This document shows, piece by piece, positions 10,779 to 59,649 of a stretch of 64,000 bases of DNA (positions are counted from its first letter, which is position 1; each line of letters opens with the position of its first letter). The position numbers were made by a program, and so were the translations under genes. The stretch covers positions 111,786,001-111,850,000 of the forward strand of contig CM075977.1 of assembly GCA_038087875.1 (NCBI GenBank), in the 5' to 3' direction. Below the pieces are notes generated by a model that saw only the letters and a program-made list of their open reading frames with translations, had not been told where the DNA came from and searched no databases. This DNA comes from Malacoraja senta (lineage: Eukaryota).

Positions 10779-11020
10779 NNNNNNNNNNNNNNNNNNNNNN
10801 NNNNNNNNNNNNNNNNNNNNNNNNNNNNNNNNNNNNNNNNNNNNNNNNNNNNNNNNNNNNNNNNNNNNNNNNNNNNNNNNNNNNNNNNNNNNNNNNNNNN
10901 NNNNNNNNNNNNNNNNNNNNNNNNNNNNNNNNNNNNNNNNNNNNNNNNNNNNNNNNNNNNNNNNNNNNNNNNNNNNNNNNNNNNNNNNNNNNNNNNNNNN
11001 NNNNNNNNNNNNNNNNNNNN

Positions 11021-12400
11021 CACACACACACACACTCTACCACACACACGGCCTCCACCACACACACTCACACACACAGCCTCCACCTAATACACACTCC
11101 GCCACACACACACACACGCACACACACCCTCCACCACACACACACACACACTCCCACCACCACACACACACACCCTCCACCACACACACCCACACACACA
11201 CATCTCCACACACACACACACCCTCCACCAAACACACTCCACACACACACCCTCCACCACACACACACATTCCACCACACACACCTTCCACCACACACAC
11301 ACACCCTCCACCGCACACACACACGCATACCCTCCACCACACACTTACCCTCCACCACATACACACACACCCTCCACCAAACACACACCCTCCGCCACAC
11401 ACATACACACACACCCTCCACCACACACACACCCTCCAGCACACACACACCCTCCACCACACACACACAAATCCTTCACCACACACACACCCTCCACCAC
11501 ACACGCACCGACCCTCCAACACACACCCTCCACCACACACACGCACACCCTCCAGCATATGCACACACCCTCCACCACATACACACACACCATCCACCAC
11601 ACACACACACACCCTCCACCACACACACACCCTCCACCACACACACACCCTCCACCACACACACACATACACACACGCTCCATCACACACACACCCTCCA
11701 CCACACACACACACACACACTGTCCACCACACACACCCTCCACCAAACACACGCAGACCCTCCACCACACACACCTACACACACCCCCTCCACTACACAC
11801 ACCCACACACCACTACACACAAACACACACGCACACACACCCTCCATCACACATACACGAACACACACCCTCCACCACACACACACTCCACACACACACA
11901 CACACCCTCCACCAGACACACTCACGCACACATCCTCCACCATACACACACACCATCCACTAAACACACACACACCCTCCATTACACACACCCACACACC
12001 CCTCCACACACACACACACACGCACACACACCCTCCATCACACACACACACTCCACCACACACACACCACCCTCCACCAGACACACTCACACACATCCTC
12101 CACCACACACACACCATCCACCAAACACACCCACACCCTCCACCACACACACCCACACACACCCTCCACTACACACACCCACACATCCTCCACANNNNNN
12201 NNNNNNNNNNNNNNNNNNNNNNNNNNNNNNNNNNNNNNNNNNNNNNNNNNNNNNNNNNNNNNNNNNNNNNNNNNNNNNNNNNNNNNNNNNNNNNNNNNNN
12301 NNNNNNNNNNNNNNNNNNNNNNNNNNNNNNNNCTCACACACACATACAATCACACATATACACTCACACACCCACTCACACACACATACAGTCACACACA
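11021..12400. repeat. (CA)n / CCCTCCACCACACAC low-complexity array with internal gap
   Basis: Seen directly; N run at 12195-12332. Confidence 0.97.
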
Positions 12401-13757: not shown

Positions 13758-16584
13758 TTAGAGGAACATGCACGGCTCTACATCCTTCCCCTTGAAAAGG
13801 GAAACATTACAATGATGACAGTGAGACCACGACTCATACGCTAGACACAAATCCGCGCGTACATCGTCAGGAAAAAACTTGAAACATTCAAGCAAACTCC
13901 CGGTAACGTTCAGGCGGCTTGACCAGACGCCCGGAGCGGGTACGCAGCCCGCCTTCCCCCCCCCCCTCCGAAGGAAGAGCAGGTACAGGAGCAGGAGTGG
14001 CGATAGGGGATCCGAGAGGACAATGAGCAGGAGAGGGAGGACGAGGAGACCGGGGAGGAGAAACGGGCACCGCAACGGGAACGCGAGCGGGAGAGGTTTG
14101 ATGGGGGGGGGGGCAGGAGGAGCAGCGGGAGAACGGGGCACCAAGGGTCGCGAGGGCAGAGCCCTGGGCATGGGAGGAGCGGTAGGGAAAGAGGTGGCAA
14201 CCGGGGGAGCAAAAGGGGCTGCGGGAGGCGGAGCGGGCTCGTTGACCGGCAGCAAATGCTGGCGGGACCGGCGGTAGATGGTGCCCTCGTAGTCAACTAG
14301 GTAAGAGCGCGGAGAGTCTGCAAAGCCGATGACAACAGCCAGTCGGTGGTGTCCGGAGGTGGACTGCATCCGGACGACCTGGCCCTTGAAGAGGGGCTGA
14401 AGGGGACGGCATGATTTGTCGTGGGAGCGCTTCTGGACGACCTGTTTCTGGGTAATGCGCTCCTGGACAGCAGCAGGGCTGCGGACTGCGGGCTGTAGGG
14501 ATCGCTGGGAGACAGGGATAGGAGGGCGTGTGGTGCGGGACATGAGCCGCTGAGCGGGCGAGCCCATGGCATGGTCGCGACAAATATTTCGGAGATTCAG
14601 TAGAGCCAGATAAAAATCCGAATGCGATAGTCTGCAATGTTCCAGCAGCTCCTTGGCACTGCGGACGGCGTGCTCTGCAAGGCCGTTGCTCTGCGGGTAT
14701 TCAGGGCTGCTGGTGATGTGGCGAAAGTTGTAGGCGGCGGCGAAGGCGCGGAACTCAGCACTCGAGAACTGGCCCCCGTTGTCAGACTGCACAGTCGCAG
14801 GAATGCCAAAGGTCCCAAAGTGGCGTTTCAGCTTCCCGATGACCGCAGCAGAAGTGAGGGAGTGCAGACGCTCAACCTCGAACCAGCTGGAGTAGGAGTC
14901 GACAAGGACCAGGAAATGTTTGCCACGCCACTCAAATATGTCCGTAGCGACCGTCATCCACGCCAGGGCGGGGGCAGGCTGTTGCAGGAGTGGCTGGCGT
15001 TGCTGGTGGGGAGAGAGGGTATTGCAGGTTGAGCAAGCAGAGACCCTCTCCCGGATGTCCTGTGCCATGCCGGGCCAATAAAATTGGCTCTAGGCCTGGG
15101 ACAGGGTGGCATCGGCTCCGGGATGGCCGCTGTGGGCAGTTTGGAAATAGCGGTCCCGCAGTGCAGCAGGCACCACAACCTTGTGGCCCTTCACCACCAC
15201 GCCGTCCTGCAGCACAAGTTCATCCCGGACTAAGAAGTAGGGCGCAGCACCAGCCGGCAAGGGTGAGCGACGGTCAGGCCAGCCACGACGGATGACGTCT
15301 TCAAGCTGTTGCAGGGCAGGATCATTGGCAGTGTGGTGAATCAGGGACTGCATCTGCTGGGAAGGCATAAAGTTGACGTTTAGCACCATCAGGTCGGATG
15401 ACTCGTACGGGTGGCGGGCAGTAGAAGCCAGCGGTGCGCGGGACAGCGTGTCGGCCACAAACATGTCCTTGCCCTTTCGGTACACAATTTGAAACGTGAA
15501 GCGTTGGAGCTGCAGCATCATATGCTGCAAACTGGAAGAAGCCACGTGGATCGGTTTGTTCAAGATCGTGACCAGCGGCTGGTTGTCGTTTTCAATAGTG
15601 AAAGTGTTACCCAGAATGTAGTCCTTGAACTTCGAGCAGGCAAACACCACGGCAAGGAGCTCCTTCTCGATCTGAGCGTAGCGTTGCTCGGTAGGAGTCA
15701 TAGTGCGGGAGGCGTAGGAGACAGGTAGTGCAGGCGGTCGTAGATTTGCAGGCAGGCGGCACCGAGACCGAAACTTGAGGCATCGCAGGTAAGGACGATG
15801 GGGCGCTTTAAGTCGAAGAACTTCAGAGTGGGGGTGCGAACCAGCCGGGATTTTAAGTCATCGAAGGCTGCCTGATGCAGCGGGTACCAACCCAGGCAGT
15901 GTCCTTCTTGGTCAGTTCCCTCAGGGGCGCACTCAGCTCGCTGAGGTCGGAAATGAATTTCCCCAGGTAGTTCACCATGCCCAAGAAGCGCTGCAGGCTG
16001 GGCACGTTGACCGGAGCTGGCATCCCAGAGACCGCAGCTGTCTTCTGTGGGTCTGGTTTTAGACCCTCAGCCATAAAAACGTGGCCCACGTAGGTGACCT
16101 CCGGGACGCGGAAGCGGCACTTCTTGGGGTTCAGTTTGAGGTTGATCTCACGAACCCTATCCAGGACTTGGCGGAGGTGGAGGTCGTGCTCAGCGACGTC
16201 TCTCCCGTACTCCAAGATGTCATCGACGATGATAGCACACGGCAGATGGGCAAATAGCTGCTCCATGGTGCGCTGGAAAACCTCGCTAGCAGAATTGATC
16301 CCGAAAGGCATGCGGAGGAAACGGAACCTGCCGAAAGGTGTACCAAACGTGGTCAGGAAGGATGAACGTTCATCCAGCGGAATCTGCCAGAAAGAGCTCT
16401 TGGCATCGAGGACAGAGAATACAGTGGCTGGGCCAACCTTTGCAGCGACATCCTCCACCGTTCGCATGGGGTAGTGCGGGCATTTGATGGCAAGGTTTAG
16501 GTCCTTGGGGTTTATGCAGATCCGGATCTCATTCTTGTCCTTCTTGGAAGCAACGACCATGGTGGAGACCCATGGAGGGATCAC
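13758..16584 (-). CDS. Gypsy pol (RT, RNase H, integrase), broken by frameshifts and stops
   Basis: LDAKSSFWQ, RMPFGI and IVDD (RT); YAQIEKELLAVV (RH); GHPG..CSTC, SDNGGQF and PQSNGLAE (IN). Confidence 0.9.
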
Positions 16585-18010
16585 TCACCTCCTTGATGAT
16601 GCCCACGGCCACCATCTGGCGCAGAGTCGACTCCACCCTGTCCTTCATAGCAAAGGAGACGCGGTGAGCCGGGCGGACTACCGGATGGACCTCCGGGTCC
16701 ACCTCGATTCCGTACTTGCAGGATAGTTTGCCCAATACATCGTCAAAACGGTGGGGGTATTCGCACATGGGATCCATGGGGGTCTGCAGCAGGTGGATAT
16801 CGCGGTGGAAGGAAACCAAACCGAGGTCCTGGCACGCACTGGCGCCCAACAGAGTAACATTCTCAGATTCCAGCAGGAGGAAAGAGACGGGCCGAGAGGC
16901 ATTCAGAACTGTGCAGATAAGGGTTGCCTTGCCGACCGGAAATAGCATGCTCCCCCCATATGCGTGGAGGCGGGAGTCGTCAGCAATAATATTCTCACCA
17001 GATCTTATCTGCTGAAAGAGGCTTAACGACATAACATTTGCAAACGCCCCCGTGTCGACCTTGGCAGAAAAGGTCTCTCCATTCACAGTAACTCGAATTG
17101 ATGGATCAGCTATCAAAGCATGTGCACCCAAGACTGAAAAAACACGCGATTCATCATGGGTGGAGCCGTTATCAGAATCAGGGAGTTCGTCTGAAAGGTA
17201 TGCGGAGCCATAAACACTATCAGTAGCAGTCAGGTTGTGTAGACTCCTTCTCGGAGCAGGGGCAGGCTGGCCCCTGGAACGGCATACTGCAGAGAAGTGA
17301 TTAAGCTTCTTACAGAAATTACAAGTCTTACCCAGCGCAGGGCAAACATTAAATTGATGACTGACAAAGTTGCAGTTTGGGCATCGACGAGGGTTAGCCC
17401 TCGTGGGCGCGGGAGTGCTATGCTGGCGTGGTGGGCCATCGCGCCGCGGGCGTTCAGCAGTGAATGTCCTGAGCCTCAGGGGGAGATACGGAGTCGACAG
17501 CAGCAGCCATGCGAGAGGCATGCAAAGCTTCATTTAAAGTGAGGTCCGGCTTCCTCAGAAGCTCTGCCCGTAGCTTCACGTCCTGTAGACCGTGAACTAG
17601 GACATCTCTGACCATTTGGTCAGGGTTCAACGTGTCCAGGCGGCAACGCCGAGCCAGGTGATGCAACGATGCAACGAAGGTGTCGATGTGCTCCCCGGGT
17701 TTCTGGCGCCTGCTGAAAAACTTGAACCGCTCTATAATGCAATTGGTGGGAATGTCACACAGCGCGGCAAATTTATTCGTGAGACATACCGGGTCCTCTG
17801 CATGCTCACCATCGGCGTACTCGAAAGATTCAAAACGTTCCATGGCCTCCGGGCCAGCCAGGTTGAGGAGCAGATGTGCTGTAACCGCAGGGGTAGCATT
17901 AGGATGAGCGATGGCGACATAGTGCTGGAAGTCGCGCCGCAAAACAGTCCACCGGTGAACGATATCGGAGTCAAACACCAGAACGTCAGGCTTACGACAC
18001 GAGCTCGCCA
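16529..18010 (-). CDS. Gypsy gag and aspartic protease (frameshifted)
   Basis: ORFs 17454-18125 and 16529-17533 contain Cys/His zinc knuckles (CNFCKKLNHFSAVC) and the protease motif KVDTGA. Confidence 0.85.
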
Positions 18011-55380: not shown

Positions 55381-55521
55381 TCTTTCAATAAGCTCCAAGA
55401 CACCGCCCTGTGCAAATAGCGGTGTTCGCCATCTGATTCATGGAGCAGCCGGTTGGAGCTGTCCCGGTATCGTGTCCCCGCGACACAAAATCACCCCCCA
55501 CTCTACTCCGGTGGCAGAACG

Positions 55522-55564
55522 ATGGGGATCGTTTTGGCTTATACCCTGTGTCTCTGCTAATGCC
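55522..55564 (+). pseudogene. Probable leader exon of the NAR-type V
   Basis: ATG MGIVLAYTLCLC*C plus 1 nt, then CTGAGT (GTGAGT with G>C). 144-nt intron to a phase-compatible acceptor at 55707-08. Confidence 0.5.
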
Positions 55565-55708
55565 CTGAGTACAACTCACACACTTCCACACTGTTGCGGT
55601 TTAGTGTACATTTGTCCGAGGCTATTTTTGAAATGAAATTGTATCGCTATCCGAGTTGAGTTATTAGCCTCTGATGCCCATACATCTCTCCTGGTGTATA
55701 ATCGCCAG

Positions 55709-56015
55709 GCTCCTTCAGGCATTCGGTGACCCAGAGTCCGACTGGGGTGACCGGGAAGAGCGTCACTCCTTTACGATCTCCTGCCGTTTTGGGATTTGTT
55801 CGCTAAGTTCAAACCGTTTTAACTCTGGACCCGTGTTCTAACATACCCAGCCCGTGGAAGAGCTGCAGCGGGTCATCGTAGGGGGACCATGTGTCGTGTC
55901 GACCTGTAAAGCGGACATGGCCATTACGCTGGAAATTCGGGACATGAGAGTTGGTGACAGCGCCAACTATCAATGTCAAGCTGCAGATAGCTGGATCGCA
56001 TGGGGTTTGAATATG
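55709..56015 (+). pseudogene. NAR-TCR V-like: NAR-TCR / IgNAR-type V exon pseudogene with a long 3' extension (candidate joined D)
   Basis: SVTQSPTGVT/EERHSFTISCRFGICSLSSNRFNSGPVF*HTQPVEELQRVIVGGPCVVSTCKADMAITLEIRDMRVGDSANYQCQAADSWIAWGLNM. Cys at 55782 and 55974, CDR1 Cys, short CDR2-less FR2 with xGG motif. One frameshift and one stop (55839). Confidence 0.8.
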
Positions 56016-58419
56016 CACATTGGAATGGGGCAGTGCTGGACCTCCTGTTAGGAAATGAGACAGGGCAGGTGGCGGAGGTAAGCGTTGGGGAGCTCTTCGG
56101 GTCCAGTGATCACAATACCATTCGTTTCAATATAATTATGGAGAGGGTCAGAACTGGACCTATGGTTGAGATTTTTGATTGGAGAAAGGCTAACTTTGAG
56201 GAGATGCGAAAGGATTTAAAAGGAGTGAATTGGGACATGTTGTTTTATGGGAAGGATGTAGAGGAGAAATGGAGGACATTTAAAGGTGACATTTTAAGAG
56301 TACAGAATCTTTATGTCCCTGTTCGGTTGAAATGAAATAGTAAAAATTGGAAAGAGCCATGGTTTTTAAGGGAAATTGGACACTTGGTTCGGAAAAAGAG
56401 AGATCTACAATAATTATAGGCAGCATGGAGTAAATGAGATGCTTGAGGAGTATAAAGAATGTAAAAAGAATATTAAGAAAGAAATTAGAAAAGCTTAAAG
56501 AAGATATGAGGTTGCTTTGGCAAATAAGGTGAAAGTAAATCCAAAGGGTTTCTACAGCTATATTAATAGCAAAAGGATAACAATAAGTAAAATTGGTCCA
56601 TTAGAGAGTCAGAGTGGACAGCTATCTGCAGAGCCAAAAGAGATGGGGGATATACTGAACAATTTCTTTTCTTCTGTATTCACCAAGGAGAAGGATAGGG
56701 AATTATGTGAGGTAAGGGAAACAAGCAGAGTAGCAATGGAAACTATGAGATTCAAAGAAGAGGAGGTGCGGACACTTTTGAAAAATATGAAAACGGATAA
56801 GTCTCCAGGTCCTGACAGGATATTCCCGAGGGCATTGAGGGAAGTTAGTGTAGAAATAGCAGGGGCTATGACAGAAATATTTCAAATGTCATAAGAAACG
56901 GGAATAGTGTCGGAGGATTGGCGTACTGCGCATGTTGTTCCGTTATTTTAAAAGGGTTCTAAGAGTAAACCTAGCAATTATAGATCTGTTAGTTTGATGT
57001 CAGTGGTGGGCAAATTAATGGAAAGGATACTTAAAGATAATATATACAAGCATCTGGATAAGCAGGGTCTGATTAGGAACAGTCAACATGGATTTGTGCC
57101 TGGAAGGTCATGTTTGACTAATCTTCTAGAATTTTTCGAAGAGGTTACTAGGGAAATTGATGAGTGTAAAGCAGTGGATGTTGTCTATATGGACTTCAGT
57201 AAGGCCTTTGACAAGCTTCCTCATGGAAGGTCGGTTAAGAAGATTAAATTGTTGGGTATTAATGGTGGAGTAGGAAGATGGATTCTATAGTGGTTGAATG
57301 GGAGATGCCAGAGAGTAATGGTGGATGGCTGTTTGTCAGGTTGGAGGCCGGTGACTAGTGGGGTGCCTCGGGGGTCTGTGTTGGGTCCACTGTTGTTTGT
57401 CATGTACATCAATGAACTGGATGATGGTGTGGAAAATTGGATTACTAAGTATGCAGATGGTACTAAGATAGGTGGTGTGGTGGATAATGAAGTAGATTTT
57501 CAAAGTCTACAGAGAGATTTAGGCCATTTGGAAGAGTGGGCTGAAAGATGGCAGATGGAGTTTAATGCTGATAAATGTGAGGTACTACATCTCGGCAGGA
57601 CAAATCAAAATAGGACGTACATGGTAAATGGTAGAGAATTGAGGAATGCAGTTGAACAGAGGGATCTAGGAATAACTGTGCATAGTTCCCTGAAGGTGGA
57701 ATCTCATGTAGATAGGGTGGTAAAGAAAGCGTTTGGTGTGCTGGCCTTTATAAATCACAGCATGAATATAGAAGTTGGGATATAATGTTAAAATTATACA
57801 AGGCATTGGTGAGGCCAATTCTGGAGTATGGAGTACAATTTTGGTCGCCTAATTATAGGAAGGATGTCAACAAAATAGAGAGAGTACAGAGGAGATTTAC
57901 TAGAATGTTGCCTGGGTTTCAGCAACTAAGTTACAGAGAAAAGTTGAACAAGTTAGGTCTTTATTCTTTGGAGCACTGAAGGTTAAGAGGGGACTTGATA
58001 GAGGTCTTTACAATTATGAGCGGGTTAGACAGAGTTAACGTGGATAAGCTTTTTCCATTGAGAGTAGGGAAGATTCAAACAAGGGGACATGACTTGAGAA
58101 TTAAGGGACAGAAGTTTAGGGGTAACATTAGGGGGGACTTCTTTACTCAGAGAGTGGTAGCTTTGTGGAATGAGTTTCCAGTGGAAGTGGTGGAGGCTGG
58201 TTCGATTTTATCCTTTAAAAAGAGATTGGATGGGTATATGGATGGGAAAGGAATGGAGGGTTATGGTCTGAGTGCAAGTAGATGGGACTAGGGGGTAGTA
58301 TTTATATATATTTTTTAAATTAAAAATTAAAAAATCAAAGGTTCGGCACAGACTTGAAGGGCCCAGATGGCCTATTTCCGTACTGTAATGGTTATATGGA
58401 ATGGAAGGGCGCATATAAC
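56016..58419 (+). other. 12-spacer RSS split by CR1 insertion
   Basis: Removing the CR1 and one copy of the duplicated TGGAATGG (56021-28 / 58397-404) gives CACATTG + GAATGGAAGGGC (12 nt) + GCATATAAC. Confidence 0.65.
56029..58396 (+). mobile_element. 5'-truncated CR1 LINE
   Basis: Consecutive ORF2 fragments (LDLLLGNE..SDHN, KSPGPD, QHGF, PRGSVLGP, YADG) and a GGTTATATGG tail. Flanked by the TGGAATGG duplication. Confidence 0.93.
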
Positions 58420-58733
58420 GTGCTAGCTTTAAGCGCTATATGATCGGGATCCCGTTTGTATTAGTTTTAGTAACCTTGCAATCAAGTTAAATTTCATTGT
58501 AATTTTCACTTTCTAAGTTATTTAACTTTGCCGTTTGGTTCCGACGTTCCTGATAACGTCGGCATCGACGTTAACCTTATCTAAACCATTTTATTCTGAG
58601 AGCTCCGTTAGTCAATGGGAACAAAATCATCCACTAGGTGTTTGGGGAACACGGAATATTACTTGTTCTTCTGAAGCATTGGAATAATTGGGCGGGGTTT
58701 CCTGTTGCTTTCTGGGCAAAATGGGGTGAGGAC

Positions 58734-58830
58734 TTTTATTTTACCGGGAAGACTGAGGGCTGGATCACTGTGTATGACTGCCGTGCATACTATAAAAACG
58801 GAGCCGGGACAAGCTTGACTTTCACGGCCG
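58734..58830 (+). pseudogene. NAR-TCR J-like: J segment (58773-58830) with 23-spacer RSS; splice donor mutated
   Basis: T-rich nonamer TTTTATTTT, 23 nt, perfect CACTGTG (58766-72), then YDCRAYYKNGAGTSLTFTA (GxGTxLT J motif). The phase-1 donor reads GAAAGC (GTAAGC with T>A). Confidence 0.82.
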
Positions 58831-59649
58831 GAAAGCACCCTAAAAGCGCTCTTTATATTCCTTGCCCAGGAATAATCAGTGTAGTCTAAAATTGGGATCG
58901 TGTGACATCAATGTCCTTCTAAGTGAAGCAACCCCAATTTCTAAATTCATCTTGCAAAATGGCCCATGGCTATGTTCGCGGAGGGCGACAGGTCTGGTGT
59001 GAGACCCGAGAGAGCAGACTGGTGCACTTCTGAAGCAGAAGGATTGTGGATTTTCAGGACAATAAATGACAGACATGTCAGCCATGCACGCACACCAGTA
59101 AAAGGAAAAAAATAAACGGAGCACCAGAGCGTTGGGCTGCACACTGATGTTCGTCCCAAGTGTTAATTAGCAGAAAATGATGGGGTTATACGAGTTCCCC
59201 AGCTGGGGTTGTTTGGGGAACGGGTAAGACATACCGATTCTGAACGTTCTCAAATCCAAGAGATAGCTGATGTGAGGGGTGTCCAATGGGGAACGGCTTT
59301 AGGATGGGTCCACGTGCTCTATGAGTGTGAGAATACTGGATGCAATCTCTTTATTGTTTACAATCCACCGAGCAAAGTTGATAGGGTAGACGCTGAGCTG
59401 TGAGTAAGTCGGAAACCCCCGCGAAAACAGCATAGACTCAAAGCAACTGACAACTGAATGCGGGAATGATTTTCAGGAGGAGAAAATATGAATCGTAGCG
59501 AGCGAGTGGCCAGAGAGGAAGTAAAATGGGATCTGGGGGACCTTGTTCTTGTCAATGAAAGTAAGCATGCAGGTACAGCAGGCAGTGAAGAAAGCTAATG
59601 ACATGTTGGCCTTCATAACAAGAGGAGTTGAGTACAATGCTTAAATACT

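Follow-up and report, generated by a model that had tools for sequence, protein, structure and literature searches.

A decayed NAR-TCR cassette in a skate T-cell receptor region, with V and D very probably joined in the germ line

Introduction

How does a variable (V) segment in NAR-TCR, a T-cell receptor (TCR) family, come to run on, in frame and without a recombination signal sequence (RSS), into what resembles a diversity (D) segment? The question is raised by a small unit of leader, V, D and joining (J) segments at 55522-58832 of the stretch studied here, 64,000 nucleotides from Malacoraja senta (contig CM075977.1, positions 111,786,001 to 111,850,000, forward strand), which as a whole is called the window. 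According to summaries of Criscitiello et al. 2006 (PMC1845163 and PMC12227049), an unrearranged NAR-TCR cassette is made up of a leader, a NAR V, a D, a J and a supporting V-delta that has no leader. A first, sequence-only reading of the window described a NAR-TCR-like V and proposed that V and D had been joined in the germ line, leaving one VD-to-J step.

Among immunoglobulin (Ig) genes of sharks and skates, germline-joined and partially joined genes (VD, VDD, VDJ, VJ) are known to occur, with joints of RAG character, and the germline joins of shark Ig have been attributed to RAG activity in germ cells (PMC2193156). For NAR-TCR, no description of germline joining was found in the published literature searched, a search that did not cover Criscitiello 2006 and Ott 2021. 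The analysis reported here makes it very probable that V and the single D of a NAR-TCR cassette were joined in the germ line and, jointly with this, that the unit as a whole is such a cassette, now decayed, within a TCR alpha/delta-type region of a skate.

Results and discussion

Anatomy of the unit

Reading of the region and a scripted coordinate check recovered every element of the sequence-only reading where it had been placed. The V exon including its tail spans 55709-56015, and its second Cys codon (TGT, 55974-76) is followed by 39 nt in frame and without an RSS (QAADSWIAWGLNM, 55977-56015). Excision of 56029-58404, a long interspersed nuclear element (LINE), leaves a 12-nt spacer (GAATGG+AAGGGC) between the heptamer CACATTG and the nonamer GCATATAAC, confirming the 12-RSS that had been proposed. 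The J with a 23-spacer RSS, expected about 320 bp further on, was found across a gap of 314 bp from that nonamer (insert left out); a degenerate 12-spacer RSS faces a 23-spacer J RSS and the 12/23 rule is obeyed. Since 12-spacer RSS-like motifs of such quality occur in the window at only about 0.07 per kb per strand, a 12-RSS exactly at the end of the tail is unlikely by chance; in homologous cassettes, moreover, it is the D 3' RSS that lines up with this one. The elements, all on the plus strand, are as follows (L001, L002, L005 and L006 are comparator cassettes introduced below).

55522..55564, +, leader exon, inactivated (alignment with three Amblyraja radiata leader regions; translation)
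55565..55708, +, leader intron, acceptor AG at 55707-08 (alignment with L002, L005 and L006)
55709..55996, +, NAR-TCR V, the V-derived part of the V exon (codon-level alignment, tblastn, blastn, tree)
55997..56015, +, D-derived segment and junction, 19 nt, CGCATGGGGTTTGAATATG, in frame with the V tail (aligns to D coding ends of relatives)
56016..56022, +, heptamer CACATTG of the kept D 3' 12-RSS (alignment; motif scan; script check)
56023..56028, +, first half of the 12-nt spacer (script check; contigs of relatives match through 56028)
56029..58404, +, 5'-truncated non-LTR (long terminal repeat) retrotransposon, the LINE, with a broken reverse-transcriptase open reading frame (ORF), in the RSS spacer (RVT_1 in two ORF pieces; target-site duplication)
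58405..58419, +, remaining half of the 12-nt spacer (58405-10), then the degenerate nonamer (58411-19) (alignment; motif scan; script check)
58420..58733, +, D-J intervening DNA, its J-proximal ~100 nt having homology with the D-J interval in thorny skate and sawfish cassettes
58734..58772, +, J 23-RSS: nonamer TTTTATTTT (58734-42), 23-nt spacer, heptamer CACTGTG (58766-72) (alignment; motif scan; script check)
58773..58832, +, NAR-TCR J segment YDCRAYYKNGAGTSLTFTAG, including the altered donor at 58831-32 (alignment with L001 and L002 J; ORF translation)

Architecture of unrearranged cassettes

Six batoid cassettes served for comparison, two from the sawfish Pristis pectinata (L001, L004), three from the thorny skate Amblyraja radiata (L002, L005, L006) and one from Rhinoraja longicauda (L003). 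In all five with a free V (L001, L002, L004, L005, L006), the coding end lies 22-24 nt past the Cys at CACAGYG-22-ACAAAAACC, an RSS with a 22-nt spacer, and none of these unrearranged V carries a long tail set directly on a 12-RSS. Three of the five (L001, L002 and L006) continue with a V-D interval of 390 nt, a D of 14-15 nt between 12-RSSs and, another ~370 nt past D, a J with a 23-RSS. Identity between sawfish and skate is 66% in the V-D interval, 69% in the V exon and 52% in the D-J interval.

Protein models alone are no evidence of joining, because they may read through the V heptamer or use cryptic splices. RefSeq NAR-TCR models (P0083, P0088, P0080, P0020) were seen to read through the V heptamer (CACAGTGAT -> 'HSD') and then to splice cryptically to J (L002:10483-10500). 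One thorny skate protein, P0089, which appeared VDJ-joined, was rejected as a joined candidate, its DNA (L006) having a normal V RSS, D and J.

The V-D junction

When the window, minus its LINE, was placed in a three-way alignment with L002 and L001, the sequences ran continuously through V to …AGCTGGA(T). There a single gap opens in the window, equivalent to the V RSS, the interval from V to D and the 5' RSS of D. Past this gap the match picks up again at the 3' end of D (window GTTTGAATATG; skate GTTGGGATATC) and goes on through heptamer, 12-nt spacer, nonamer, D-J interval, J RSS and J. By blastn the match to the L002 V ends exactly at 55996, no homology to the V-D interval was found anywhere in the window, although sawfish and skate keep this interval almost as well conserved as the V exon, and a search of the window for a re-inserted copy of the excised V-D fragment found none. 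Of the 19 nt at 55997-56015, GCAT…GGGG recurs in the D of sawfish and …ATAT in that of skate, and the D coding ends that align to them (…GGGATATC in thorny skate, TGCAT…GGGGCAT in sawfish) stand directly 5' of the D 3' heptamer; this sequence was present on no unrearranged V among the homologues (five V segments). Taken together, the alignment, the limits of the blastn matches and the likeness to D indicate that the tail consists of V, trimmed by ~4 nt, and of D, followed by D's own 3' 12-RSS.

The V side of the junction ends ~4 nt short of homologous V ends, and the D 5' border is not fixed. The missing DNA thus begins within a few nucleotides of the V coding end and the alignment resumes at the D 3' end, so that both ends of the deletion appear to lie at or close to coding ends. 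The germline joining of V and D, with one VD-to-J step left, which the sequence-only reading had proposed, is supported by the alignment gap, by the comparators and by contigs of related organisms (see below).

On the J side, blastn aligned 58640-58744 with the L002 D-J interval (72% over 106 nt, E 3e-10), 58788-58843 with the L002 J, and 58642-58834 with L001 (66%, E 5e-6). The coding part of J is 58 nt long (58773-58830). A DJ join concealed behind a long J was considered and rejected, as the J segments of homologous unrearranged cassettes have the same length.

Identity as NAR-TCR

When the intact 58-aa piece of V served as query in a library-wide HMMER search, NAR-TCR gene models from many elasmobranchs were returned, and the proteins closest to the window V are NAR-TCR gene models of sawfish and skates. 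The window V is 44-54% identical to NAR-TCR gene models vs ~38% to the best VNAR in PDB; VNARs are the best single-domain matches among solved structures. A maximum-likelihood tree, which holds no IgNAR sequences, places the window V on a long branch within the batoid NAR-TCR V clade with support of 97/99, bearing out the NAR-TCR-like V of the sequence-only reading and its grouping with NAR-type V, and the choice between NAR-TCR and IgNAR rests on evidence other than this tree. NAR-TCR V segments have been described as lacking the canonical Trp of the WYRK motif and as carrying a Cys in the a-b loop (PMC1845163). The window V has Phe (TTC) at the codon of Ig Trp41, where the sawfish and skate copies read FF(K/R). 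The a-b loop codon is CGT in the window vs TGT (Cys) in three batoid homologues and lies beside a 1-nt deletion, and loss of this Cys is read as decay of a former NAR-TCR member. In addition, J and ~100 nt upstream of it are homologous to NAR-TCR J regions.

That the window belongs to a TCR V region is indicated by two further segments. One, at window:962-1243 (+), is a V segment of TCR alpha/delta type with …WYRQ…TDTAVYFCAV; the other, at window:6413-6541 (-), is a V remnant with a stop and with …SAVYYCALS. Elsewhere in the window, 10779-11020, 12195-12332 and 14001-18000 comprise two runs of N and an adjoining G+C-rich stretch (G+C 0.55-0.60 vs ~0.44 elsewhere).

Decay of the cassette

The whole cassette is a long-dead pseudogene. 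Its leader, with an ATG at 55522, is homologous to those of thorny skate (MGIVLAYTLCLC…) despite a stop and a missing donor: TTA (Leu) of the thorny skate copies has become TAA at 55558-60, and the splice donor GT has become CT at 55565-66. In a codon-level alignment with the V exons of thorny skate, Rhinoraja and sawfish, the V exon shows a 1-nt deletion after 55757, TAA in place of a Lys codon at 55839-41, and changes of GGRF to GGPC and of YYC to YQC. The claim that V stays in frame for 39 nt holds, with the caveat that the body of the exon carries this deletion and this stop. The J splice donor reads GA at 58831-32 vs GT in relatives (GGTAAG/GGTAAT in L001 and L002). With these lesions in leader, V and J and a degenerate 12-RSS that is split by a LINE in this genome, the unit is no longer usable. 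The sequence-only reading was silent on this decay, and also on the DJ- and VDJ-joined NAR-TCR cassettes of other batoids described next.

Other joined cassettes

In L005 of thorny skate (L005:6850-6965) and L004 of sawfish (L004:7570-7665), D and J are fused immediately behind a D 5' 12-RSS, the GTAAGT donor is intact and V keeps its 22-spacer RSS, making these cassettes DJ-joined in the assembly. In the Rhinoraja cassette (L003:13693-14062), V, D and J are contiguous in one open frame (…YYCKAKYKWDDMAAGRYWSTYYKDGTGTTVTVTG) with a GT donor, and a supporting V-delta lies 2.8 kb downstream; from its sequence, L003 is possibly a functional germline VDJ-joined NAR V. Germline joining is therefore recurrent in batoid NAR-TCR cassettes.

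The window unit belongs to the same cassette family as L003, L004 and L005 and shares with them a clean loss of the interval or intervals together with the RSS pairs. In contrast to these three, its V-D step is done and its D-J step is not, and while L003 has an open frame and an intact donor, the window copy is decayed. Compared with an unrearranged NAR-TCR cassette, it has the leader, a NAR V without Trp41, a J with a 23-RSS (formerly with a donor), a position among TCR-type V segments and flanks homologous to those of sawfish and skate. It differs in that V and D are contiguous, with no V RSS, V-D interval or free D, in the loss of the a-b loop Cys, in its damaged splice and coding signals and in having no supporting V-delta within 5.2 kb.

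Among better known systems, the joined Ig heavy clusters and VJ light genes of sharks and skates (PMC2193156; PMC2192082) resemble the window unit in that segments which are split in homologues are fused, the fusion is inherited and the outer RSS is kept; unlike them, the window unit is no Ig cluster but a NAR-TCR cassette set within a TCR region, and this copy is dead. A VD-only join is typical of germ-line and not of lymphocyte rearrangement (PMC2193156).

A further parallel comes from marsupials. In marsupial TCR-mu, the membrane-proximal (supporting) V is fully germline-joined (Vmu-j) and functional, and there too a T-cell receptor chain with two V domains takes one of them from a germline-joined gene. 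The window differs in that it is the distal NAR V that is joined, only as VD and in a pseudogene, and the lineages are independent.

Origin of the join

The most likely route would be a RAG-type V-to-D coding joint made in a germ-line cell. Such a joint would have removed the V 22/23-RSS, the V-D interval of ~390 nt and the D 5' 12-RSS, and its product would be V(D) with the D 3' 12-RSS facing the J 23-RSS, in need of one more 12/23-legal step, VD to J. The analysis shows the anatomy, the lack of a V-D interval, homologous flanks and the recurrence of the junction in other organisms; RAG as the maker of the join and germ cells as its site are what we infer as most likely to account for them.

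Several observations weigh against a V-D join of this kind. The 12-RSS is weak (heptamer 6/7, nonamer 5/9) and the D-like stretch is 19 nt long vs 14-15 nt for D segments elsewhere. The comparators share no more than 61-69% identity with the window V, none of them being an unrearranged paralogue of its own V lineage, and at such a distance the exact germline D, the trimming and any N or P nucleotides cannot be reconstructed. The D-proximal part of the D-J interval has no detectable homology, and the contigs of relatives could be paralogues and not orthologues. Finally, no supporting V-delta was found in the 5.2 kb downstream (58.8-64.0 kb, to the window end); it may lie beyond the window or may have been lost.

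The alternative that best survives is that an ordinary deletion of ~390 nt, without RAG, fell between V and D in a cassette that was already dead. Random deletions are expected in a pseudogene with so many lesions, and to reconstruct the exact junction would take a closely related split paralogue. Against this, the loss on the V side starts no more than ~4 nt from where the coding part ends, D keeps its 3' coding end together with the RSS there, at the very point where the alignment resumes (even with the D 5' border not fixed), and no remnant of either lost RSS is left; two random breakpoints so near to segment borders are improbable in a cassette of ~1.1 kb. Moreover, the clean DJ and VDJ joins in other NAR-TCR cassettes argue for a recurrent recombinase-type process. 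An ordinary deletion is therefore considered unlikely.

Less likely still, and by our estimate quite improbable, is an ancestral design without D, in which a long germline CDR3 (complementarity-determining region 3) and a 12-RSS of its own belonged to this V lineage from the start and nothing was ever joined. An entire sub-family may indeed have such a form; but in each of the five unrearranged batoid V segments the tail is short and ends at a conserved RSS with a 22-nt spacer, the end of the window tail lines up with the 3' end of D and the 12-RSS behind it with the 3' RSS of D, and a sub-family of such form would most simply have come from one VD join.

Inheritance across relatives

A germ-line origin of the V-D join was further examined with Logan contigs from four runs, representing four samples and three coded organisms (A, B and C), compared over 55450-56350. 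Over 55813-56028, identity to the window is ~98% for contigs from two samples of organism A, 94% for C and 91% for B; these contigs have no indel, and the sole substitution near the junction is 55996 T>C. The same junction in three organisms at 91-98% identity indicates that the join is inherited and not somatic, and on these sequences it would predate the divergence of organisms A, B and C. From organism B, a contig covers 55538-55802 with no gap, and the 1-nt deletion in V is thus present in B as well. One contig of organism A over window:55713-55804 is ~93% identical, with a 1-nt gap at 55744 and less depth than the main contigs have, and probably represents a paralogue of the window V in the relative's genome.

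That the join is a somatic V-to-D rearrangement in lymphocyte DNA, or an assembly collapse, is scarcely credible, even if fish genome DNA often comes from blood or lymphoid-rich tissue, given that the junction recurs in four runs and three organisms, the unit is unfit for expression or selection, and a LINE lies inside the remaining RSS.

The LINE in the RSS spacer

RVT_1 was matched twice within the insert, in two ORF pieces with stops between them. The target-site duplication TGGAATGG is 8 bp long, its 5' copy at 56021-28 and its 3' copy at 58397-58404 (the last 8 nt of the insert), and family copies that extend 5' beyond 56027, seen as loose ends of contigs, indicate that the window copy is truncated at its 5' end. 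The contigs of related organisms follow the window through 56028 and then diverge, in agreement with the in-silico excision and the 12-nt spacer; three of them end their match exactly at 56028 and continue with 4, 10 and 79 unlike letters. From the point at which the match ends, the LINE is probably absent in those relatives and the 12-RSS intact there. The stretch that follows the LINE is present in two runs of organism A. The LINE insertion is probably later than the VD join.

Another LINE copy, with an open reverse-transcriptase ORF of 316 aa and DNA ~68% identical to the RSS insert, lies at window:61286-62236 (-), and more LINE fragments occur at 51.9-52.4 kb, 6.2-6.4 kb and 60.8-61.0 kb. 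A search of the window found no second NAR V and no close LINE copy useful for defining ends.

Implications

Germline joining, which has been documented for Ig clusters, has been regarded as a sign that in cartilaginous fish the V(D)J recombinase acts at times in germ cells. The VD join described here, with the batoid DJ and VDJ joins, extends the record of germline joining to units within a TCR locus. It is not the first of germline-joined antigen-receptor genes as a kind; the locus adds an instance, evidence across species and one more state in the series, VD, which lymphocytes do not normally make, and it is also an instance of a LINE landing in an RSS spacer. Its interest is moderate and lies mainly in this VD state and in its value as a dated fossil: because the junction is common to organisms that are 2-9% divergent, the window copy is a datable fossil of the join. 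On a wider and distinctly tentative view, the VD join could be old and common to several skate species, perhaps also to neighbouring cassettes, and germ-line RAG could have repeatedly remodelled cassettes of the TCR locus.

As the window copy is dead, it has no functional consequence of its own. If germline joining of this kind is true of the family, intact joined members, such as the VDJ copy of Rhinoraja, could encode NAR-TCR domains with inherited, semi-invariant CDR3s.

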